From: Klebsormidium nitens
Taxonomy: Eukaryota > Plantae > Klebsormidiophyceae
Assembly: GCA_000708835.1 (NCBI GenBank)
Contig: DF237154.1
Location: 79,753-143,752 of the forward strand
Direction: 5' to 3'
Length of the DNA: 64,000 nucleotides
The first letter of the stretch is position 1; each line of letters opens with the position of its first letter. A program made the position numbers and the translations under genes. Shown here one piece after another: positions 10,771 to 26,429 of this stretch. Below the pieces are notes generated by a model that was not told where the DNA came from, searched no databases, and saw nothing but the letters and a program-made list of their open reading frames with translations.

Positions 10771-11709
10771 ACCTTTCCGAATTTCAACTTTCCGAACGGG
10801 AAATCCGAATTTCTGACTTTCCGAACGCAGATAATTATTTAATTATTCGGAATCATTACCTTGGACTACGGTATTGCGGCCATCCGCTCGCCTGGGCACC
10901 AGGCGCAGCCACCGGGCTTGCCTAACTAGGTAGTTGGAACTTGGAAATCGGCCATGTGGCAAACAGAACCGTCCACCATTTCTCTGTGGAGCATCGGACG
11001 GTTCTCCTCCGCTGGATAAGTAAGGGGGTTCTGCTGCTGCTTTTACTCGTCTCTAGACTCGTCCGGTGCCCGGAGTCCAAGACCGGGCGGACGCTGGACT
11101 CACCTGCGGCAGAAGAGAAGCAAGTTCAAGCAACGACAAGCATCCGTCAGGATCCATCACAAGGATACGTCTCGTGTACCGGTACCTACCGTACTTCATG
11201 TGCTGATTGTGCTGAAGAAGAAAGGAGGAATTCTGAATGCTTCTAGCTGAGTTCTAGCAGTACAGCTGTTTGCGTCAAACTTGCCATCGGGTTCCAGACT
11301 CTCGGAGCGTGGTTCCTGATCTTGAGCCGTCCGATGCCTGCCTTGTCGTCAATCGAACGGTCCAAGATCAGGAACCATGATCGGAGCATCTGAAACCCGA
11401 TGGCAGCTTTGACGCAAAGAGCTGTACTATTATAGCTGTCGAAAGATACATTCATTCGGCAACAGCGGCCAGCTTGGGAGGCTGCGCAGCAGATAGGTTA
11501 CCTACATCAAAGGATATGCGAAGACATCTGCGCTGACTAGGAAGTTGGAGCCAAGCTCAAAATCGTCTCGGGGCGGACCTGCTGCGCCCCGAGGGGAAAT
11601 TGGCGGTGACTGGGGGCGGCTCCTCTGAGTTCTGGATAAGAGGCTGTGGTCTTTTGATTGCGCAAGCACTTTGCATCTGCTGAATTATTGAAAAGTTGGT
11701 TCTTCAACA

Positions 11710-14700
11710 ATGCTCACCCTAGCAGACATTCATAAGGCCAGGATTGTCGGCGATGGCGAAGAGATTGTCCTTCTTGGACATGTGAGTGGGCCTGTTCACT
11801 GCTTACAACTACACAGCTTTTATCCACAAAATCCAGAATTGGTCGAATTTTTCGCAGATACTGAATGTAAGTTGGTGATAGTCAAAGCTAAAGCGAAATA
11901 TTGTGGAAGTGGAGGAACTATTGCCATCCCAGAGGTTCCTGAGCTGTCAGCCAGAGTTTTTATTGCACCGTAGCTTGTTTGTTTTAAGCTTTCTTGCAGA
12001 TCCTGTGGCAGCTCCTCCTACTGCGACTCTATCTCGCTTGTGGGTACTGAAGGCGCAATTGTGGGTCTTAAGCAGATGCTGGGAGACTTGAACAATCCTG
12101 AGTCGCACGCAGTACAGGGTTTGAGCTCAATTTGTAGAGGAGGCGCCTCAAACGCTGATGGAGCTTCTTTATTGATCTTTCCGGACACCCTCAGCAGTTC
12201 CAAGCATTGAGCTTCTCATCTGGTTGAATGTTGTGGTTCATATGAGACGATATTTTCGCTTTCATTGGGGCAGTAAGTTTATCCTCTTGGCCACTCCGTG
12301 TGAGCTCATCTTTCCGGAGTGGATTTCCTTGACATCTCCAGGTCTTCCACACGTTCCGCTGTATCCCATTGGCAGAGACATATAACTCCTATTAATATGT
12401 GTGCCCTCATTTAAAAAATAATAACGTGACAGTAAAGTACGCAATGCCAGTCACTTCACTCTGCCCAATTAACGCCTTGTTCCGCCTGGGTGCTTTCTTT
12501 CTGGCTTTTGTGTTTCCCTGCAGGAACCTAGGCAACACGGCGTGGAGATTCGAAAGAAATTGCAAGAAATGCGACAATTTCACCTTTCATCTGTCTCGCC
12601 TTTCCTTCTTGAATCTGATTTTGACAAGCCCCCATTTCACAGGGCTTTGGCACAGACCAGACCGTGTGGCACAATCTGGAGCCCCTCCTGCTACGGCGTC
12701 GCTTCCGAGTCATGCTCTACAACCTGATGGGCCAGGGGACAGGTGTCCCCACCGGCTTCTCCAGCACATCTCTCGGCCACTCAGCAAACTCGAGGGTTTC
12801 GGTGGACAGCAATGGCTCGGACAGCCCCAAAGCGACGGGCAAGAAAGCCACCGCAATCGAGCGCGCGACCTCGGACGTGGCGAACGAGGAGTTTGAGCGG
12901 GAGCTCAAGGCGTTGCAGCTGTCGCAGCACGGTGGGGCCGGCGAGAGCCGACGGGGGATGTTTGGGAGGAAGATCAACGAGTCGTTCAGCCGGCTGTTCA
13001 CACGGAGCAAAAAGAAGAGCAAGGCCGGGGAAACGGCGGTGAGCGAGAAAACGCATGAGGAGGAACCGGTCGAGTTGCACCCGGAGGAGAGCGCCAACGG
13101 GGCAGCGTCCAAAGATCCGGAGTTCTCAGGGAGGCGGGATTTCAAGATTGAGGATCTTGACAGGGAGGGAGACGAGCGGCCTGAGCGGATAGACGAGGAG
13201 GAAACGGAAGGGATCGTGTCGGCCGAGGACTTCAACCATTCTCGGTACACCACACTGGACGCGTTTGCGGAGGACTTGATTAATCTTATGGACGAGATGG
13301 GGGTGAAGCAGTGCATCTATGTGGGGCACTCGGTGTCGGGCATGATTGGGCTGGTGGCGAGTGTCAGGCGGCCGGACCTATTCAAGAAGCTCGTGCTGCT
13401 GACGAGCTCCCCGAGGCAAGCCTCCAAGTTGTCCCCTTTGTTTCCATTATCAAAACTCACTAACGTGCTGAGCTGAGCTTGTATGGTTCGTCTTATCCTT
13501 CCTCTTGCTATCACTTGTCAAGGACCAGCAATGGGCGACTCGCTTTCAAGGAGTCTCTTGGGCTTGTCTCTGGTGTAGAGTATGAGGTAAGTGACAAAAG
13601 AGGTGTCATGCATGCAAGATCTGAGGAGAGGTCTTGGTCTTGGGCAGTTCGGAACGTCCTTCATTGTTTGATTGTACTGGACTTCTATAATTCTGAGGAG
13701 CAAGGTGCAAGACAGTGGATGGTCTTCTTCCCCCTACTCTGAGACTCGCAGCATGGTTCTTGTTGCGTCTTCTCTTTACTTACTTGTGAAATAGCTTGCA
13801 AGTGCTTGTATTCGACTTGATAAAAATCATTGACTCTGCATTGGGTGATGGTGCCAGCCCGTGTTGATTGATTGACTTGCTGCTCTTCTGGTTGAGCCAC
13901 CCGAATCTACTTTTCCAAAGATTGCTTAGCTACTTCCAAGGTACTGAGGTTGATTTCAAGTGCTTACTGACATACAGATTCGATGAGTGCTTCTTTGATT
14001 CATTGAAGTATTGCAGCTGCTGCGAGCTGGCAATCAGAAGACAGCACTAGTCTAAGGGTCAAAGTAAGGAATGTTATCCCCTTAAGAATCAAAGTCGCTG
14101 GCTGCCTTGAAAAGAGCAATTGTCTTGTGTCTTACTCTCTGCTTTACACTACAGTCACTGCAGCCGCTGTCTCCAGTGTGCATGAGTGTTGAGAGAGCTC
14201 CACAACTCGTTCTCTGTTCCCTGTCAAACCTCCTCTCATAAGCAGTCCCGCTCGGGAGAAGGTTCGCGTCCCCTTGATCTTGAGGTCCGCGCCCCCATTG
14301 TCTTTGCAATTTGTTTGTAACAAAACTTGCTTACGAATCTGGCTGGGGTCCCTCCTTTCCATGGTTCACGTATGGCTCACGTATGTGCACCTGCGCTGAG
14401 AAGTGTCCTTGTACTCTTCCTCCTCACGAGCGGCTACGGTTGTCATCTCCTTCCTCTTCTTAGCCGCCTCAGCTTCGACCTGTGGGTCCCGCTGTCTGCA
14501 GCCGTCGTTTTCCACTGCTTTTGCGTGTCTGTCGTGTCATCTTTGTGGCCTTGTCATTTGTTGTCCCGGGAGAAACACCCTTCTTCATCGTCCCTTAAAG
14601 TATTGCCAATTGTTTCCTTGTAGTGCAAGGGCGTGAGCCAGCTAGCCCTTCTTCCTTTTTCGCAGTGACACCTCTTTTTTTTCTCCAGGGTAAAGCTCAA

Positions 14701-15917
14701 CCTCCTCTCCTTCTCTTCTAGTTGAGCGCCGATACTAACCCAGTCTTTCTCTTGATTTCGTGCTAACCCTACTTTCATTCTCCATCCGCAGATATCTCAA
14801 CGACGGCGACTACGTGGGTGGATTCCAGGACGAGGACATCGATAACCTGCTGGCGTCGATCAAGACCAACTACAAGGCGTGGGTCCAGGGTTTTGCACCG
14901 GTGGCCATTCACACTCCCGACAACGAGGCGGTGGCGGATTACGCGGCGGGGCTACTGGACGTGCGGCCCGATGTGGCGTACTGCATACTGAGTACCATCT
15001 TCCGGTCGGACTACCGGCACCTCCTGCCCGAGGTGAGGCCACTTGCGCATATGCTGCTTATCTTCTCAGGCCTTTGCTTGTCTTACCTTGCATGGTCTGC
15101 TGTTGCCGTTCAAAGGGACTCGTCGGTGGGAGCAGAGGACTATTCTAACGCGGGCAGAAAAGGTGGGGAGCGAAGGGGATGGGAAGAGTGCAGAAGAAGA
15201 GAGAACTGGCGGAGGCTACGCATTCTCTTATTGGCCGGGTTGTCGAATTGTAGCTCAATGAGCTATCTCGTTGCTATAGCATAGAGAGCCAAGCCAACCT
15301 ACGTAATTGATGCGTTGGCCGTATTCGTTCCATGTTATACTTCCACTTCTGCTTTGAACGTGGAGTCGTCAGTGTCAGCGGTCTGCTTTTTGAGGAGGTC
15401 GTGTGCGTCTTGGCATGCCTTAGCTGGTTTTCATCGACACTCTGGAGCTCTTGGCTGGGATTCGCTTGCGCTTGCAAGGGCCCTCCGAAAGTCGAAGGAA
15501 GCGTCCAGAAGCTTGAGAACCTCCAATAGACGCTCTCGATGGGATTCAGCTTCTAGGTTTCTTGCTGGTGCTGGCACGTACATCCTGTTGATAGCGCGGC
15601 CATTGTTAGACTGACCCTCTTCATCCTGGTCGCTGTCAATAGATCGACATTCAAGTCGTCTTGCTTTGCCTGTGGACAAACAGGAGGGAACCCTGTGCTA
15701 AGCAGCGGGTCTTGCCCATGTGTAGGTGTCGGTACCGTGCCACGTGTTGGTGAGCAACAACGACGTGGCGGTCCCGCTCGGTGTGGGCGAATACATGCAC
15801 AAGCACCTGCCCAACAGCGCTCTGGAGGTCCTGTCTACCCACGGGCATCTGCCGCACCTGAGCTCCCCCATGCTTGTGAACGCGGCCCTCATCAAGCATA
15901 TCGAGCAATTACCTTAG
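11710..15917 (+). CDS. KAI2: KAI2/D14/RsbQ-family alpha/beta-hydrolase, 425 aa including a ~158-aa insertion. Exons 11710-11781, 12643-13415, 14792-15032, 15726-15917.
   Basis: Spliced product reads MLTLADIHKARIVGDGEEIVLLGH-GFGTDQTVW...YNLMGQGT [insert] FNHSRYTTLDAF...GHSVSGM (Ser)...SPR-YLND.DY.GGF...NYKAWVQGFAP...RPD..TIF.SD.R...PCH...NDVAVP (Asp)...GHLPHLSSP (His). Exon sum is 1278 nt, in frame. Orthology to KAI2 proper versus a sister clade is not established. Confidence 0.9.
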
Positions 15918-17650
15918 GAGGGCGCACAGTCTGTTGAGCTCGACGGTCAAGCCCCGACAGCTACTCCAGAGCAGTTTTGCATCCAAAGTGCTGCCAGAAA
16001 TGGCCGTGCATGCTGTACGAGGCCGTTGAATGGACAGGTCTTTGGCCATGGAGTTCTTACTAAATTGATAGCTTGACATCAAGCAGCGAAGGCACTAAAA
16101 TTGCGGGAGATTGTGAGCTGTCAGTATACCCTGCTGTAATCGCTGAATGGAAGGAAGCGTTTGAGTATTTGTAAGCTATAGGTCGCGGTTTCCAATAATG
16201 TTGTTGAGGGATGTACTAACGTCTAGACTTGTCAGTCTCAGGAATAGGCATGATCTACCTGCGAGCGAGCGCCGCAAGACCCATTAGCCAACCATTAGAA
16301 CGAAAACAGTTTGAAACCGCTAAAAAGCAGTAAGTTCTGAATAGTTGAGACGACGATGGCCGGCATCCACACACAGACACGTAGACAGTGTGACTATTTA
16401 TCCATTATTATGAAGCCGCTGGACCGGCATATAAAATTGTTTGTTAGTTTATTTGACTGTGCATTTGCAAAGTATGAGGACATTGCACTCGAAGACTCAC
16501 ACGGCCGGCGCTTGTTGCTTTTGTATGAGAACTGATGAGCCGCGTGTGCTTAACTAGTTACTAGTTGCCGAATTGGCATGGCGCGCCCCATGGAATGATT
16601 GTAGCAAAGTCGCGAGACCGTCTTGAAATTTCTGCACTTGATTCATATCAAGTTCGGATCGATTTCCATGGATATTTTCAGAAGCGTTGCATGTATACCA
16701 AGCTAAAATGTGTACATATGTGGCTAGCTGTCCGCGATCCGATGATCAGGTCAGATTTCATATTTGGTGCGCGCACATGGCCAGACGCTTGGGTCGGTGC
16801 ACGACCGTTTTCTTATAATCCATGCTATCGACTCGAATGCGTGTTTTGCAAAAGCGGCAGCGCGCCCGGTGCTGTGCTGCATGCACGCAACTCGCTCATC
16901 ATGAGGGTCGGACTGCGGCCCTCCCACTAGAGACGACGAGCATAGCACACCATCTTCAAGATATGTACCTAGGTCGTCTGAACAACTGGCCCATCCTCAC
17001 TACGCGCTTTATTGGTCAACTGTGTGTTTGGCAGAGGATAGAAATGCAGTGAGAATGTTTGCCACCTATATGTACATTGCCTGCTCTTTGTTCCTTGGTT
17101 CAACTGTCGGTAAGTACGTTCGAGTCTTCTTTCGTATGTAAGTAGCATTCTGTACTGTTCGATCTACTATGTAGTCGCTGCACATTTAAGGATCTCGTTG
17201 AGTTTCTTTCCTTGAATGACTGACGGCACGTAATGCTGTGTGTTTGAATGTTGCTGTCTTCTGCGTGCAATGTGTCAGGAGCTGTGTCTGCACCGAAATG
17301 GATCCGTGAACTGCATCTGATCCTTGATGATGCACCCCGTGACGTCCTACTTTTGACTATGCTATTGGGGGATCCCCCTTGGAAAGATTGCGGTGTTACC
17401 TTGACTACCTGCGATGCAATACCTGAGCGGATCGATGCACATGTGACGACCAATCAAGTGCCAACCCCTACTATGTCAATCCCCACCCTTGACTAAATAC
17501 ACCCACCATTCTTCGTTACCGCATTGCTAAACAACCTTCCTTGGAGAGTCAGCCACGTTGAAATTGCCTTCTAGCTTTCTCATCGTAAGCATTAAATGGA
17601 CTCCGCCTCATGACCTCAACTCGAGATTTCAACGATGGGCATCAGTGACG

Positions 17651-20600
17651 TCACGATGGCATCGAGCGTGGTTTCGGCGGGCAGCCCCCCATCTCGAGAT
17701 CCGCCATTTCGGAGATCGCTGGTGCCCCCGGTTCGCTTCGTCGTTGCCGGCTTAGCAGCTTTTCGTCCAGGGAACTCTTCCGCAATTTGCGGACCATGTC
17801 CCGGGGGCTGACCCGGCTTCTCGGCGGGCCCGGCGACTGCGAGCGGCGGGTGCGGGTCGCCTCCTTCTGGAGGAGCGCGGTCGGGGTAAGCAGCGCAACC
17901 GGCGACACGAGCGCGGCCGCCTCCGCCTGGTCCAGGCGCGCGCGTGCCATTTCTTTGATCATCGAGTGCAGCTTCTCCGCGTTCAGGGGCTTACTGGAGG
18001 GGGGTGGAAGCGAACAGCCGTTGGATCTCTTTTCTCGAAGGGACGTTTGTAAACGAAGCCGTCAGCCTTTCAACCCTGTTCGTAAGTTGTGCAGCTTGCG
18101 ATTGGATGACAAAACACATCAGATCGGCGCTTCCATCACACAAGATCCAAGTTGCGTTACATAAAGCGTCCCTTTCATTTGAATTGGAGCCCGGGTTCTC
18201 TAACCCCTCGTTTGAGGCCCCTTGTGTGTTGCATTCTTCCGTGGCAGAGAGGCTCTCTTGTGGCACAGCAGGGTGACGTAAGCCCATCTTGACCTCCTCC
18301 GGCTGTGGCTTACCACTCTCGTGGCCATTACATACCGCTGTCTAGAGAAACCCCTTTTCAACCACAAGTCTTGACAGCTCGGCCCCCTCAATTCCTGACA
18401 CCCTCGCACCCACCTGATGTAGGCGTCCATCCCCAGCGCGAGGCAGCGCTCCGCGTCGCCGGACATGGCGTGTGCCGTCATGGCCACGATCGGCGTCGGC
18501 CGGCGCTGCAGTCGCAGCTCCCACGCACGGATGGCGGCGGTCGCGGCAAACCCGTCCATGACCGGCATTTGGACCTGGGGGTTAAGCGAACCGATTAAGC
18601 CATTTGTATTTGGGCCAGAAGCAAGAACGAAAAACAAAGTCCAACCGGAGAAGTAACAGGACGAGTACCTTTCAATGAAAGACTGACGTGATTCACTAAT
18701 CCCAACCGACCGGGTTCCGAGCAGCACATCTGACGGGGAGAGAAAGCGAGACTGTGAATGCAGGCCGGATTAGCTACCAGCGAGGAAATCGATCCGACGG
18801 CTTACGTCCATGAGAATGAGATCGAACGGCTCCTTTTCGACCATATCGACGGCTTCCCGCCCATTTCCCGCCAGCTTCAACGTATGGCCCCACTTCGTAA
18901 GTAGCGCGGTCGCCACTTTCTGGTTCACCGCATTGTCTTCGGTGACCAACACGTGCAGGCTGCCCCGCAAGGGGGATCCCCGGGGCGCTTTTCGCGCCGG
19001 GGGGGTGAGCCCCGTGGAACCGGTTTGCCCGATCGCGGCGTGCACCGCGCGCAACAAGCTGTCCTCTTTGATGGGCTTCGCGCAGTGGCCCTGCGCGAGC
19101 GGCGTTAGAAAGCTTCAAACAGCCAGGACAAAGGAGTCTCGCTTCTGCTTTCTTTTCCATCAGCAGTTTGCATTCTCTCGACTGTACGCTTGACAGGCTA
19201 AGATTGTGCGCGAGCGAAGTGCCCACCTGCACCTGCAGCTCGCGCATCCTTTCCGCGTGCTCGGCGGCGGACAGCGCTAAGGTCAGCGCCACGACCGCCG
19301 TCTTCGCCAACAACACCGGCGCCTTCTCCCTGACGTCAGCAACCATGTCGAGGCCCCCCATCCCAGGCATGCAGACGTCAGCCAGCACAAGCCGGAAGGC
19401 CCTCCCCCCTTTGGCGGCGGAGTGTAACGCTTCTATGCCGGCGGGGCCGGACGTTACGACCGTGGGTGACATGCCCCAGGATGCGGTCATACCGCCCAAG
19501 ATGCGACCGCTCGTGACGTTGTCGTCCACGATCAAAACCGGCAGTTTCTGCGGGGATAGATTTCCTGAATCAGTAATTGACGTACTCAAATCCGCGTTGC
19601 AACCACAGCTCTTGTGCTGTCCAAACATATAGGCGGAAGTCTGGTCTAGCTCTTACATTGGTCATGTGCGGTTTTCTGTGCTCTGGGTCTTCGGGCCAGC
19701 AGTCTTCAGAATGTTTCTCCTTCCAATCTGACCCTTTCTGTAGATGGGAGCGGTTATAGATTTGATAAAGCTTGCAAATTTCGGATCTGACTGAGTACAG
19801 CTAGCTGCGTGATCTTCCCATCTCGCACAAAGCCACCGAGATAGGAGGCTGTTTGCTGTTTCCAGCTCACACCACGGTTTCTCGCACCTTACCTCTCTTC
19901 TGAAAGACAAAAGCTAACAGTTACAGAGTGTCCTGGACGCTCAACTTCGAACTTCGAGTTCAACCTCAAATCTGAAACCTCAGAATTTCGTTGCAGATCG
20001 CCGACTCGATCCTCTCGGAAGGATTTTTTCAGACCTCCCACCTCAGCGTTCTAAGATTCAACAAAAAAGAGTCAATCACTGCAGGTATGAAGCCGACCGA
20101 CATTCAGCGACTTCTGCGCGCGCGCGCACCTGGAGCGCCTCGAGCATTGCCGCGGATCGCTTAGCTGGCGGCGTATCGCTGAGCTGGAAGACGGCGGTGA
20201 ACAGAAAGTTGCTGCCCTGCCCCTCGTGCGATTCCACCCACATGGACCCCGCCATTGAGGCGGCCAGCTTGGCGCTGATAACTAGACCGAGCCCGGTTCC
20301 GCCGTACACGCGGGTGGTGGACGAGTCCACCTGGGAGAACGGACGGAACAGCAGCGACTGCTTCTCCAGCGGAATGCCAATGCCTGGACGGAAAGAAAAG
20401 GGGCGCGTTCAAACATAAATCAAGTCACAGAGAATAGGTAAGATCTGGATGAGCGGAAGCCCTCGAGGGCTTGGGGCGCCTGTACACATTGAGCCGTTTC
20501 AACTTACGCCGTGTAGTTTGAAATGCTCTAGCAGATGTCGTAAGAAGCCTTTCCAGCCTGTTGTTGAACATGAAACAAACCCACAGTGCGACAAGCTCTT

Positions 20601-23600
20601 CGGGAAGAGTTCTCTTTGAGACCGTACAAAGTGATCAACTTTATCTTGCATCGACTGTCTCCGAGCCGAATGGAAAACTGTGAGACCTGAACTGCCCACC
20701 ATGCTTTTGCTAGGCATCCCTGGCGAAGCTTTCAGGAAACAACGCGTAAGACTTTCATCCGAGATGACAACGGACGTTTTCAACATTTTTGTCGCTCTTC
20801 ATGAAGCGAAAAGCATGTTTCTAAAAGTACTGATCGTGGGCGCGCGCACCTGTGTCTTTGACGGAAAACTTGAGGCCGATCTGTTGCCCGTCTCCGGAGA
20901 TACTATCCAAGATAATGCTCACGAGCACCTCGCCGTGGTCCACGCCAGGGGCCGGGGTGAACTTGATCGCGTTGCCTGTTCATGAATAAGGTGTTATATC
21001 ATTGCCTTTTCCCTTCATCCAAGGTCAAACCCGTATGATCGGATTCTATTCCCCGACCAGACCTTAGACTGTATTGCATCGGGGCCTCGAAAAAGGGTGT
21101 TGTCTGCTTAGACGCATAAGTCATCTTACGTGAGACACCTGTCCGACCTTCTGGACACTCACAGACAAGACCAAGATCCGAAACAGCCGCCACGTGTCGG
21201 CTTAACGACCGGGTCGAATTGACAAACTACTCAAAGGTCTACCGATGACATGTCCTAAAACAGCCGCCCCGGGTCGCCCACAAGAACCGGTTGACGAGAT
21301 AACCCCACTCACCGATCAGGTTGACGAGGATCTGAAAGAGCCGCCCCGGGTCGCCCATGAGGTTGTCCGGCACGTCTGGCGGCACGTCGACGATGATCTC
21401 CACGTTGCGCCGGCACGCGCGCACAGCCAGCACGGTGGTCGCCGCCTCTAGTTGGTCGCGCAGGCTGAAGCCGACGCGCTCCAGCTCCAGCTTCTCCGCC
21501 TCGATCTTGCTGAAGTCAAGGATGTCCTGCGGAACGGCGGAATGGCGGACGGAGTGGTTTGGAGTGATAAAACATCTCGAAGTTTTGGTGCTCCTTCAAA
21601 GAAAAGTTACAAAACTCGAAGTTCATTCATGCAAGGTGGGGGACGTGTTGAAGGGTGAAACGGATTTCTGAAACAAGCAGATTGCTGCTATTTTACAACA
21701 GTTTCTGAAGGCCTTGTGAAAAAGCTGAACGTCGATGGGGACGTGTGCTTCTATTACAGATTATTTAGTTCAAGTGGCTTGCATCTCGGAGGATGATGCA
21801 AACGAGAGCGAACAAAAAACCAAGGTCTCCTCTCAACAATTTGACGAGCCAATTACCATTTTTAATGTAATTATCTAATTCTATTGAGCATCTCTAAACC
21901 GTCGTTGACCACATCGTTTGGAAAATTGATGCAACCCCAACAGGTGCTCTTCTGTTGAAGACCAGCGCTGGTCGTAACATGGTAAGCAGGTTGCATTGGC
22001 CTTACGTTGATGACGTTGAGAAGGTGCTCCGCGGAGAATTTGACGAGCTCCAGGTACTCTTGCTGCTCCGCGTCGACGTGGGTCTCCAAACACAGCTCTG
22101 AGATGCGAGAGAAACGCCGGCAATCAGGCTGCTGAGCATGCTTTTTGGAAGTAGCTATCCAGTAACAAGCGTCTTGGAACACGCTCCAAGTAAGAACAGC
22201 GCATCTTCTCAGTTTCCAATTCAAAGTTTCTGCCTCCGCCGGCCATGGCAGGAATCTGGTGAGTCCCCAGTCCCCTATACAATCTGACCCGAAACGACGA
22301 AACGCCCGAGGATCAATCCAACATAACAAACATAAAGGCCGCCGGGCATTGCCAACGTCATTCGCCTGAGATGATCTGAAGCCTGGCTGCTCTTTTCCAG
22401 AGGAGAAGAAGGCTTACCGGTGCAATTGATGATCCCATTTAGAGGTGTCTGCAAAACAAGAAGAAGTCTGTCAAATCTTTCTCGAGATCTGGGCTTGCGT
22501 TTTGAAGACCCTCAGAGGAGGATCTTACTTACCACAAACACGCGCTTGTGAAATACGGACACATTTGTCAAAGCGGCCGGACCTCTGTCTTCCTCCTTTG
22601 AATCTATCCCAAAAGGCCGGGCTTGCGGCCCAGTAGCGGCCCGCTCGCGCGCGCGCGCGCGCTCACCCGTATTTCGTGGCTCATGTTGGCGAGGAAGTTG
22701 GACTTGATCTTGTTCGCGGACACGGCCTCGTCTTTCGCATTCACCAGCTCCGCCTGCGCGCTCTGCCGCGACTCGATCTCCGCGGCCAGGTCCGCGTTCG
22801 CCCACATCAGGTCGCGCGTGCGCTCCTCGATCCTGCGCGGAACGACGCCGTCGGTCTAACTTAAAAGAAACAACCAAGCTCGGACTTTGGAGCAGAAAGA
22901 GAGATAACGGAGAGTTGCTTCAATCTTCTTTGGCCTTCGATGCCTGGATGATCAGCATCCAAACCCAAAGAAGCTCTAGTTACTCTTATTTTTCATCACT
23001 TCACCTCTAAAGAGAGACTGTGTGGACAGATGCGGAATTATGTCACTCACACACGTTGTGCAGATTTGAAAGTGCACGTACTGGAGCTGACCCTCTGCAT
23101 TTGTTGCAGCTAGTCTGGAAAGATGAGCAATCTACTTAGCCGATGGTCCCATCAACTCAATGCCAATGCTAACAGCAGGTTTTCTTCTGCAAGATTCAGA
23201 GCGCGCGTGTTCTTACCTGGACTCGAGCGTACTGTACAGCTTAGCCATTTGCTCCGCCATCTCGTTAAACGTGTTCCTCAGGCCCCCGATCTCGTCGTGC
23301 ATCTCCCAGCTCGCGCCCTTAGCGCGCGCGGACAGGTCCCCGTCCGCGAGCGCGCGCGCCACCTTGTCGAGCTTGGTGATGGGCGCCGTGAAAATGCGCG
23401 AGAGGAGGTACGACGCGCAGATCCCGAGCGCGAGCACGCAGGGGACCGTCGCGAGGATGATGGTGCGCATGTGGTGGATCGCGCCGTAGGCCTCGCTCGC
23501 GTCGATCTTAGCAACGATGCCTGCGGGAAAAGGGCAATGAAGTCTGAATACAAGGGCCGCGCCGGCCGAAACTTGCGACCGGAAGCAATAGACTGTAAGC

Positions 23601-26429
23601 TCAACCATCTCTGGGTGCTGAAATGCTCATTGCAGCGACCCAATGCGGCCTCGAGAACCGCGGTGACTGAACTTTTTGTAAAAAGCCTTTTGCGTCAGGA
23701 CAGACGTGGGTTTAGTAAAGATCAGAAAAGATGTACTTTCGCGGGAAAGGTTCCTCACCCCACTCGAGGATCCCAAGCGGCGCATATGCTGCCGCGACGA
23801 CCTTGCCCCGGTAGTCCTTCTCGTTCTGGAAGCCAGTCTTGTTCAAGATAGCCTGCACGAGTCCAAGTTCTCTGTCATCAGTCTGCAAGCCCTCATTCTC
23901 GTTTGAGCAGGTTGCCATGAAAAGGCGCGCAGAATTGGCCCACAGCGGAGCGTTGAAAAGTCTCTTCACAGTGGGTTTTCGATGTTGTAAACCTCCAATC
24001 TCGTTTCTGTGTGGCCGCTGATGTCTGCTAGCTTTCCGTTGCCCATTCCACAATTCCTGGTGCACACAAATCCTTGCATCATCAGTCGAATCCGGAGCAC
24101 CCGCTTCTGCACCAAGCGTCAACCCCGCAAGCACAGCAATCTTGAAACTTGACAACAACGATCATGCGTTGAACTGCTCAAAAGGCGCTGCGGAAATGTA
24201 GATCATGTATTCCCGAACGTACTAAACAAACTGCTTTGCCGCGGACTCGTTTCGCCCTAGCTCGCCCACCTTTTCCAGCGCCCGATCGGACTGCCACGGC
24301 TGCACGTGCGGCGCGAGCGGGTCCCGGCTGGGGGGCAGCACGAGGCGCAGCGCCCCGGTGCCCGGGTCGACCACCCCGAGCAAAACCTCCCCCGTCGACT
24401 GCAGCCCCACCCCGTCCAGAACTAGATCGTGGAACTTTTTCGCGTCCAGCGTCACGTGCACGTACCCGATCACGACGCCGCTCCCGACCGGGAAGATGAT
24501 GGGCGCGCTGGCGGTCAGGACGAGCCCCCGGGACGAGTTCACCGGGAGCGAGAACGGGGTGACGTCATCAAGGATGGCGTCAGCGGCAGTGGCGTTGGAC
24601 GTCCTGAGCAGGGCCGTGCGGTTGGCGTCGTAGATGACGATCGAGCGGACGTCCGGGAGGACCGACGCGGCGGTCCGTAAGTCGTTGACGCCCACCTGGG
24701 GCGGGGCGAAGCCATGTCGGAGGAAGAAGAAAGACTCCAGCTCCGTACAAACCTTATCGGATGGGTTCGATTGGCCCCTGTTTGCAAAAGGCCTTGAAGC
24801 TTGCGTTTTGCAGGTAAGCTCCAAACTGAGTGACCAAGACGACGAAGTGGGAGGCTGGTCCTTCACCCTCGCACTTCCTCCGGTACAACTTGACCTGCAA
24901 AGTGGAACAACGGAAAAGCATAGGTCGCGTCTTATCCAAGTATCAGGAAGCGGTCTGCCCATCGAGGAAGTTGCCCGCGCGTATCGGACGCTGACCTGGA
25001 CGTCCGAGGAGCCGAGGGTATCCCCCGAGTTGTGCCGCAGGAGCAGCGCGTTTATAAGCACGCGCGTCGCGATGAGGTTTAGGTTGTCGGCTTCGCTGGC
25101 GAAGTAGTGCAGCACCTCCTGCTGACGCAGCGTGACGACCGTCGTCAGCCGCCGCTCGATCTCGCTGTCAATCACCTTCTGGCTGTTGAGCCTGCGGGAA
25201 AAAAGGAACAGCGGTGATCAAATTTCATTCTTTTGGAGAATGAGGGTCTGCTCCTTAGCGCCAGGAGAAATATCCGCCGACAATGGTGGCTGACGTAGCG
25301 GTGTGCTTTTGGGGTATTGCAAATGGAGAATGGAAAATGGGGTAGCTAGCACAAAAGCTGGGTAAATCACAAAGGGCCCTCGTCTAGGGCCTTTGATTTT
25401 AAAAGGGTGAAAGTAAGCAACAACAATAGTGCTTCTCAAGGGGAGGTTGAGTCCAGCAATAATTATCTTCCCATCACACAAGGAACCCTGCCGGAGTAGG
25501 GCGGTGGTATGCTGTTCTCAGGATGGCTTGGTTGCTTGGAACAGTCACCCTTCGGAGCGCCTACTAAGTGCCCCTTACAAGCGCCATCCAGCAGCGGCTG
25601 AGCTCTGTCGCTTGTCCTCTTTGAAAAGGTATCCATCTCACAGATGATTTCTTGGACCCAAGACACGCAACGTGAACCACCAATTCGGAAAGAAGAGCTC
25701 GATGTAACTCTCGCGAACCTGACAAAGTTTGAATGAACCCCACCCATCACCAATGGACCAGACCTCAAGGAGTGCAAAACATTGGTCCTCATGACACCCG
25801 TCGAACAGATGCTCCATAAAGGTCGCACCCGCTGATGGGCGGACGCGCTTGTGCACTCACCAGAGGACGAGCGCCATGGACCCGGACGAGACCACCACGA
25901 GCACCGCGACGAACAGCGTCAGCTGCAGCGCGATCGAGAACGGCACGCGCTTCTTCCGTTTCGTGCCCAGGTCCAGCGATACCCCCGGCGCGGCCGTCGA
26001 CATCGCGCCTCCCCGCGTCCAGCTACGCCGAGCCCGGGTCCCGCGCTCCGACTCGGGTGCGCTCGCGCGCGGGCTGCGCGACTCCTGATGCCAGCTGCCG
26101 CGCGCTTGAGGATCATCGGAGGGGTGCTCTTCGTCGCTGGCCGGGGAGGCGGGTGTCTCGCGGGACAAACGGCTCGGGAAGAGAGCAAGCCGGGGGCGGG
26201 GCCGCACGGGGAAGGAGTGCGCTTCCGCGTCGGCACCGGAACGAGCGCCAGCTGGTTGCGCACTGCTCATTTCCTTCGGAGTTGTAGCTGAGGTCCTCTG
26301 ACCTCTCCTAAGATTCGGCATCTCCAGCTGTACGTCCGTTTGCATAACAAAGGTCTGCCCGCTTTCCAGGTTGACAGACGGCTCCGTGGGACTTCCCGCG
26401 GAGTCTGCGGTAGCTTCTTCTAGGGCCAT
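17651..26429 (-). CDS. Membrane hybrid sensor histidine kinase, TM-Cache-TM-HAMP-HisKA-HATPase_c-REC-REC, ~1193 aa. 15 exons: 26429-25861, 25191-24996, 24695-24270, 23852-23759, 23520-23217, 22832-22667, 22448-22418, 22097-22006, 21526-21313, 20975-20850, 20383-20130, 19547-19227, 19090-18806, 18574-18414, 17993-17651.
   Basis: H-box [20 protein letters not shown]; [10 protein letters not shown]; N-box [17 protein letters not shown]; G1 VKDTGIGI; F-box [22 protein letters not shown] (G2); two receivers (VLIVDD..VLAD..T..KP and VTEDN..ILMDVQMP..MTAH..SKP); HAMP segment [34 protein letters not shown]; two hydrophobic helices. All introns GT-AG; exon sum 3582 nt, in frame. The start codon is the least certain part. 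Confidence 0.92.

Follow-up and report, generated by a model that had tools for sequence, protein, structure and literature searches.

Does a run of 158 codons in the middle of the hydrolase core of a KAI2-like gene belong to the encoded protein, and, if so, what might it do there? The question is raised by a 64,000-nucleotide stretch of the genome of Klebsormidium nitens (contig DF237154.1 of assembly GCA_000708835.1, positions 79,753–143,752 of the forward strand; hereafter the window, in whose numbering all positions are given), in which a gene of the KAI2/D14 family carries extra in-frame residues at 12742–13215, between the segment MGQGT, which ends at 12741, and FNHSRY, which begins five residues past 13215. 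Taken together, the evidence makes it very probable that this is an expressed exon-2 insert in a constrained paralogue, i.e., a lineage-restricted loop expansion. As an explanation of the whole, we favor, at somewhat better than even confidence, a coding, conserved, and disordered insert acting as a docking or regulatory arm.

Evidence that the insert is an expressed part of exon 2

The gene lies on the + strand and has four exons, with a spliced coding sequence of 1278 nt specifying a protein of 425 amino acids (aa). The open reading frame (ORF) 12664–13476 (+) is free of stops through 12742–13215; the remaining exons were located by three-frame translation, and an in-frame stop at 11689–11691 makes 11710 the first ATG (Table 1). 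The RNA evidence consists of assembled contigs from four runs of four different studies, placed on 11650–15950. In each run, one contig of ~2 kb skips all three introns, which have GT/GC..AG borders, and crosses 12643–13413 as a single unbroken piece, and at the contig level there is no joint inside exon 2 in any of the four. The preliminary description had placed the extra residues in frame within one exon and had pointed to RNA coverage across 12742–13215 as the relevant check; both the placement and the coverage are borne out by these contigs. The spliced contig has a depth of 18–238, as against 0–4 in the intron bins, where there are small contigs only; the runs therefore have the character of RNA, and the dominant assembled transcript includes the segment. 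The small contigs within the introns (depth 1–4; e.g., 13488–13638, 14023–14287, and 15097–15283), none of which joins an exon, are probably pre-mRNA or trace DNA.

The GC content at third codon positions (GC3) of the insert is exon-like at 0.79, with the other exons at 0.82–0.83 and the introns, read at the same phase, at 0.41–0.51. One could nevertheless envisage an exitron or retained intron, whereby a 267-aa form would be the functional one and the contigs would display just the unspliced or retained version: exon 2 does hold in-frame GT..AG pairs, the best donor being CAG/GTGTCC at 12743 with several in-frame AGs downstream, and contigs may miss rare isoforms. However, no joint within exon 2 is seen in the very contigs from which all three true introns have been removed, the candidate donor is changed in both orthologous loci introduced below (ACTGGCGTC in L001 and ACCGGGGTC in L002), and the candidate acceptors have poor pyrimidine tracts (0.33–0.53 vs 0.67–0.80 in the real introns). 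Along with the GC3, a reading frame kept over all indels, and a ratio of non-synonymous to synonymous rates (dN/dS) well below 1, this rules out an intron or exitron as the main form of the gene and leaves a functional spliced version very improbable. An origin of the insert by exonization of an ancestral intron is likewise unsupported, the one outgroup gene examined, Closterium KAI2, being intron-free at the site. On the combined RNA and sequence evidence, 12742–13215 is very probably a translated, expressed part of exon 2.

A second, divergent KAI2-type paralogue in Klebsormidium

Exon 2 alone recovers 59 PDB sequences at E <= 0.001, nearly all of them KAI2, D14, DAD2, HTL, or RsbQ, with PpKAI2-like H as the best match (E 4.8e-22). 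These matches cover both flanks of the insert: ORF residues 2–26 align to the helix A/strand 4 segment ending in MG.G and ORF residues 183–254 to helix B, the nucleophile elbow, and strand 6. Exon 2 encodes helix A and strand 4 ahead of the insert and helix B and the nucleophile elbow (GHSVSG) after it. A full-length alignment with KAI2, D14, and bacterial members is collinear over a core of ~265 residues, including the four-helix lid region, with a 1-residue gap outside the insert. In it, Ser254, Asp375, and His403 align with S95, D217, and H246, in agreement with the earlier assignment of a KAI2-like hydrolase with an intact triad, and the spliced translation minus its 158-residue insert comes to 267 aa, the size that had been anticipated. 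The introns at SPR/Y and before VPCH fall in the same codons as the two Closterium KAI2 introns, which points to shared ancestry with streptophyte KAI2. With its spliceosomal introns and a syntenic orthologue (L001, see below), the window gene is an ordinary nuclear gene.

In a maximum-likelihood tree of 44 sequences, from which the insert columns were dropped and kfl00006_0340 was left out, the three insert-bearing proteins form a 100/100 clade with a long stem (0.91 substitutions per site); this clade is sister to Closterium plus land-plant KAI2 at 91/86 support, at a node that is not starred and in a tree from which the canonical Klebsormidium KAI2 is absent. A single KAI2-like sequence per Klebsormidium genome has been reported, with kfl00006_0340 used in the family phylogeny (Bythell-Douglas et al. 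2017, PMC5490202), and that sequence, as given in the supplement of the same paper, differs throughout from the window gene. By these comparisons, the window gene is a second, divergent Klebsormidium paralogue rather than kfl00006_0340, and a streptophyte-algal member of the KAI2/D14/RsbQ family of α/β-hydrolases whose core is intact and strongly constrained. To the published surveys, with their one KAI2-like gene for Klebsormidium and no large insert, it adds a second one that is expressed and under constraint.

Expansion of a loop of otherwise fixed length

A word-indexed protein search with exon 2 gathered 189 family members, and the insert is present in only two of these, namely P0001 (88% aa identity; encoded by L001) and P0002 (61–63%; encoded by L002). 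The 90% cluster to which P0002 belongs adds three more sequences, two of them from JGI metagenomes, and each of the three carries the insert. Both L001 and L002 are genomic contigs with the same four-exon structure, and in each the insert occupies the corresponding site of exon 2; the sources of L001–L004 are the Logan runs SRR23617307 and SRR14092359 and the JGI samples 3300060284 and 3300060285. In blastn, L001 matches the window over the entire exon 2 and its insert at 85% nucleotide identity, and the introns do not align. A search of other relatives, which had been suggested at the outset, places the insert in frame and at the same position in two diverged lineages. The gene's own 425-aa protein was absent from the protein-search matches, although its length is in range.

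Beyond these orthologues, the insert aligns to nothing in the solved PDB structures when searched with the ORF, and it has zero matches in Pfam. An exhaustive phmmer search of its 158 residues against 1.84 billion (1.84e9) cluster representatives recovers only P0001, its own orthologue cluster; the ESM Atlas has no look-alike (best 0.82, below the useful range); and a scan of metagenome contigs with EFSGRRDF and PE[RP]I[DL]EEE yielded 552 pattern matches, of which none was confirmed. There is no second copy of the insert within the window. An intein, mobile element, or borrowed domain was rejected given the lack of a Pfam match, the lack of a relative among the 1.84e9 representatives, and the single copy in the window.

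The loop that houses the insert was measured after aligning the window protein with all collected matches of at least 200 aa. From the Met of MG.G to the Arg of RY, it has exactly 15 residues in 109/109 other relatives, which include land-plant D14 and KAI2, Closterium, and bacterial RsbQ-like proteins; the same span is 173 residues here and 168–174 in the six insert-bearing sequences. The fixed 15-residue loop is a characteristic of the family rather than its defining feature, and the expansion, which very probably arose in a Klebsormidium-type lineage, is the novelty of this gene. The preliminary description knew of no such insert in the family; neither the insert nor the paralogue was found described in the searched literature or in the main text of Hori 2014.

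Selection on the insert and its anatomy

By the Nei-Gojobori method, dN/dS between the window and L001 is 0.18 for the insert and 0.05 for the core (dS 0.55 and 0.51, respectively), and between the window and L002 it is 0.31 and 0.07 (dS 1.58 and 1.62). The insert departs from neutrality in both comparisons (Fisher p = 1e-11 for L001 and 5e-8 for L002), and its non-synonymous rate is ~4x that of the core (p = 1e-5 and 1e-18). Every indel within it is a multiple of three and removes or adds whole codons, and its length stays at 153–159 residues across all lineages. These values indicate that the insert is kept under purifying selection, weaker than that in the core.

In composition, 66% of the insert is disorder-promoting and 37% is charged, with zero Trp, Tyr, or Cys; order-promoting residues account for 16% vs 40% in the core. 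AlphaFold2 models were made of exon 2 only, with 257 aa for the window gene (from a 35-row alignment) and 252 aa for L002. In the former, the predicted local distance difference test (pLDDT) score is 68–94 in the hydrolase flanks and <50 nearly throughout the insert; the L002 orthologue presents the same picture, with pLDDT <50 in the insert and helices at equivalent places. All the parts that the preliminary description had picked out, viz., a Ser-rich start, a predicted helix over ANEEFERELKALQL, a basic amphipathic helix, and an acidic tail, are found, and the structure prediction that it had envisaged returned low confidence together with two helices at the same places in the two orthologues.

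Several blocks of the insert are conserved across the lineages: GV.TGFS.TSLGHSA at the entry, SDSP, A.ERATSD, EE...EL in helix 1, DPEFSGRRDF..EDL, and PE.I.EEE..GIVS in the return segment. The hydrophobic positions of helix 1 are kept in the alignment with the distant orthologue. Helix 2 is the highest-moment 18-mer of the insert in all three orthologues (Eisenberg moment 0.68, 0.61, and 0.77; net charge +5, +5, and +4), with an invariant pattern G.FGR.I.ES..RL..R.K.K.K, the hydrophobics F, I, F/L, L, and F/L at i, i+4, i+8, i+11, and i+12 in all lineages, and K/R-K/R-x-K/R kept. The acidic tail has a net charge of -4 to -5 in 15-residue spans starting at residues 193 and 198. The models and alignments thus depict an insert that is probably mostly disordered and that carries a pair of short amphipathic helices, of which one is strongly basic, along with an acidic 15-mer that hardly varies.

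This anatomy bears on three other explanations. A compact novel folded domain, such as a helical subdomain packing on the lid, would be in keeping with several conserved blocks and two consistently predicted helices, and the AlphaFold2 runs had a shallow alignment and exon 2 without the rest of the core to work with; we nonetheless see little likelihood of it, given the scarcity of order-promoting residues, the abundance of charged ones, the absence of Trp, Tyr, and Cys, and the low pLDDT of two independent models. Residues 127–151 might instead be a calmodulin- or membrane-binding amphipathic helix or a nuclear localization signal (KKKSK; RKEK in L002), which would couple the receptor to calcium, the membrane, or the nucleus. 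The moment of 0.61–0.77, the charge of +4 to +5, and the retention of both the hydrophobic spacing and K/R-K/R-x-K/R are as such a function would have them; the resemblance is one of pattern only, basic amphipathic helices are common in disordered regions, and we rate this specific assignment as improbable.

The third is a tolerated, largely functionless loop expansion, in which the constraint would merely come from having to avoid harmful sequence and to lead the chain back into the fold. It could account for the higher non-synonymous rate relative to the core, for residues ~152–181, which are variable and not alignable with L002 at the nucleotide level, for the low AlphaFold2 confidence, and for the absence of a homologue elsewhere. 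It sits poorly, however, with near-invariant blocks at dS ~1.6 (13/15 positions of DPEFSGRRDFKIEDL, the hydrophobic face and basic residues of helix 2, and A.ERATSD), with a length held at 153–159 residues in all lineages, with dN significantly below dS, and with zero length change at the loop in the 109 other relatives. We regard it as unlikely.

The D3/MAX2 contact face and a proposed role for the insert

In a model of OsKAI2-D3 built on the AtD14-D3 crystal structure, D30, D51, E174, and N181 are conserved polar contacts (PMC11350264). The first of these (AtKAI2 D29) is D in 109/109 relatives and in the window protein. The second (AtKAI2 D50) is D in 109/109 relatives, bacteria included, and N in the window protein, and this Asn co-occurs with the insert in every insert-bearing fragment covering the position. 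The third (AtKAI2 E173) is E in 108/109 relatives and D in the window protein, and the fourth (AtKAI2 N180) is N in 91/109 relatives and again D in the window protein. The polar contact set of eu-KAI2/D14 is therefore not kept and reads D, N, D, D; Phe174, which adjoins E173, is kept in 107/109 relatives and replaced by Y in the window protein. The insert begins 8 residues past the D50 position, and in the canonical topology of α/β-hydrolases the C-terminal end of strand 4 lies on the active-site/lid side of the sheet. No clear MAX2 was found in the Klebsormidium genome (Bythell-Douglas et al. 2017, PMC5490202).

Given that the insert adjoins Asp50, that this residue is Asn here, and that two further modeled contacts are changed, we propose that the insert acts as a flexible arm that emerges on or beside the face with which land-plant receptors dock D3/MAX2 and that takes no part in catalysis. 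In this proposal, the partner-binding face would have been remodeled in the insert clade, and the arm, with its three conserved interaction-type elements, might bring in a partner specific to the lineage or, by folding back, gate the receptor; MAX2 is reported to be missing from this alga. The conservation of its motifs and an insertion point adjoining a residue reported to contact D3/MAX2 make docking or regulation plausible, and the insert may thus be a built-in module of the kind put forward in the preliminary description; partner docking or autoregulation would be the most economical reading. Taken by itself, we hold this role tentatively, at rather less than an even chance. A more elaborate version, to which we give a low probability, is that the paralogue replaced F-box docking with its own output module: lid movement on ligand binding might expose the basic helix and the acidic motif, which could then bind a lineage-specific effector (or calmodulin, the membrane, or importin). 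If true, it would represent a pre-MAX2 or alternative signaling route for a proto-KAI2 receptor.

Several considerations weigh against these proposals. Since assembled contigs drop rare variants, a minor isoform without the insert is possible. The insert alignment is shallow, with six sequences and two deep lineages, and the structural models are confined to exon 2. Tolerated disordered linkers with a few embedded motifs typically show dN/dS of 0.2–0.3 as well. The placement of the loop relative to the D3 face is deduced from distance along the sequence and general fold topology. Finally, bacterial relatives, which lack MAX2, also keep Asp50 without exception, so its replacement here may be no more than a by-product of the rebuilt loop and need not point to a different partner.

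Comparison with known systems

The window protein resembles land-plant KAI2/D14 and charophyte proto-KAI2 in its collinear 267-residue core and Ser-Asp-His triad, and most of the KAI2/D14 pocket aromatics are in place (F26, Y124, F134, F157, F194, and W153); with Closterium KAI2, it further has two intron positions in common. It differs from KAI2/D14 in its 158-residue insert in a loop that is of invariant length in the latter, in its stem branch of 0.91, and, at or near the D3/MAX2 contacts of KAI2, in the changes Asp50 to Asn, Glu173 to Asp, Asn180 to Asp, and Phe174 to Tyr. The inserts previously described for this family are short, e.g., 5 residues in the fern DDKB. The RsbQ of Bacillus subtilis and bacterial RsbQ-like proteins share the fold and triad, with the 15-residue loop region in the bacterial relatives, and show ~54% identity to the window protein over the nucleophile-elbow segment. 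In contrast to the window gene, which shares introns with streptophyte KAI2 and falls beside it in the tree at 91/86 support, these RsbQ-type genes have neither insert nor introns. RsbQ acts through a separate partner, RsbP, and not through an F-box protein; hence, the family can use different outputs.

Disordered loop insertions with short linear motifs in eukaryotic enzymes offer a second parallel: they are similar in their charged low-complexity composition, low predicted order, conserved islands, and faster evolution than the host domain. Unlike such insertions in general, the host here is a hormone-receptor-type hydrolase and the site adjoins the signaling face of the land-plant proteins. 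The gene bears on how KAI2-type receptors worked before the MAX2-SMXL pathway and on their role in streptophyte algae. The insert and its three motifs can be used as baits for algal partners, and proteins with and without it can be compared for ligand response, localization, and stability. If the insert is inert, it would still be a well-documented lineage-specific disordered loop, and only that.

Gene structure and neighborhood

Table 1. Features of the KAI2-type gene and its insert, in window coordinates.
Feature	Coordinates	Strand	Basis or remarks
Exon 1, coding part, Met1-His24	11710..11781	+	Joint 11781>12643 in spliced contigs of 4 runs; frame translation
Intron 1, GT..AG, 861 nt, GC 0.46	11782..12642	+	Spliced RNA contigs
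Exon 2, residues 25-281 and two bases of Arg282	12643..13415	+	Unbroken contig piece 12643-13413 in each of 4 runs
Asn51 at the AtKAI2 Asp50 position (OsKAI2 Asp51)	12721..12723	+	Family alignment
158-codon insert, Gly58-Ile215, strand 4 to helix B loop	12742..13215	+	RNA contigs, PDB alignment, orthologues
Conserved entry segment GVPTGFSSTSLGHSA, residues 58-72	12742..12786	+	13/15 positions invariant in six sequences of three lineages
Predicted helix 1, residues 101-119, SDVANEEFERELKALQLSQ	12871..12927	+	AlphaFold2, exon-2 residues 77-95; 79-88 in L002
Basic amphipathic stretch RRGMFGRKINESFSRLFTRSKKKSK, residues 127-151	12949..13023	+	Predicted helix 2 at 130-143 in both AlphaFold2 models
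Acidic linear motif DPEFSGRRDFKIEDL, residues 182-196	13114..13158	+	13/15 positions invariant at dS ~1.6
Acidic tail returning to the core (…PERIDEEETEGI)	13159..13215	+	PE.I.EEE..GIVS conserved
Catalytic Ser254	13330..13332	+	Alignment
Intron 2, GC..AG, 1376 nt, at SPR/Y	13416..14791	+	Spliced contigs; Closterium KAI2 intron at same position
Exon 3, lid region	14792..15032	+	Spliced contigs, alignment
Intron 3, GT..AG, 693 nt	15033..15725	+	Spliced contigs; Closterium KAI2 intron at same position
Exon 4, coding part, Asp375 (15762-15764), His403 (15846-15848), TAG stop	15726..15917	+	Spliced contigs, alignment

L001 is syntenic with the window, the next downstream gene included: 17219–17968 of the window matches 6912–7627 of L001 at 76% nucleotide identity, and this conserved region reaches the start of a hybrid histidine-kinase gene, placed at 17651–26429 in the preliminary description; gene order is therefore kept between the two species. 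A few kb from the L002-type orthologue, retrotransposon-type ORFs (integrase, chromodomain) occur in L003 (31–2910) and L004 (10172–11871).

The donor of intron 2 is GC in the window gene and in L001 (AG/GCAAGC), and the donor at the same codon is GT in L002 (AG/GTAAGC) and in Closterium KAI2 (AG/GTAAGG); it lies at ~2578 in L001, ~904 in L002, and ~1869 in L005. The GC donor is a recent GT-to-GC change, and the intron continues to be removed in all four RNA runs.

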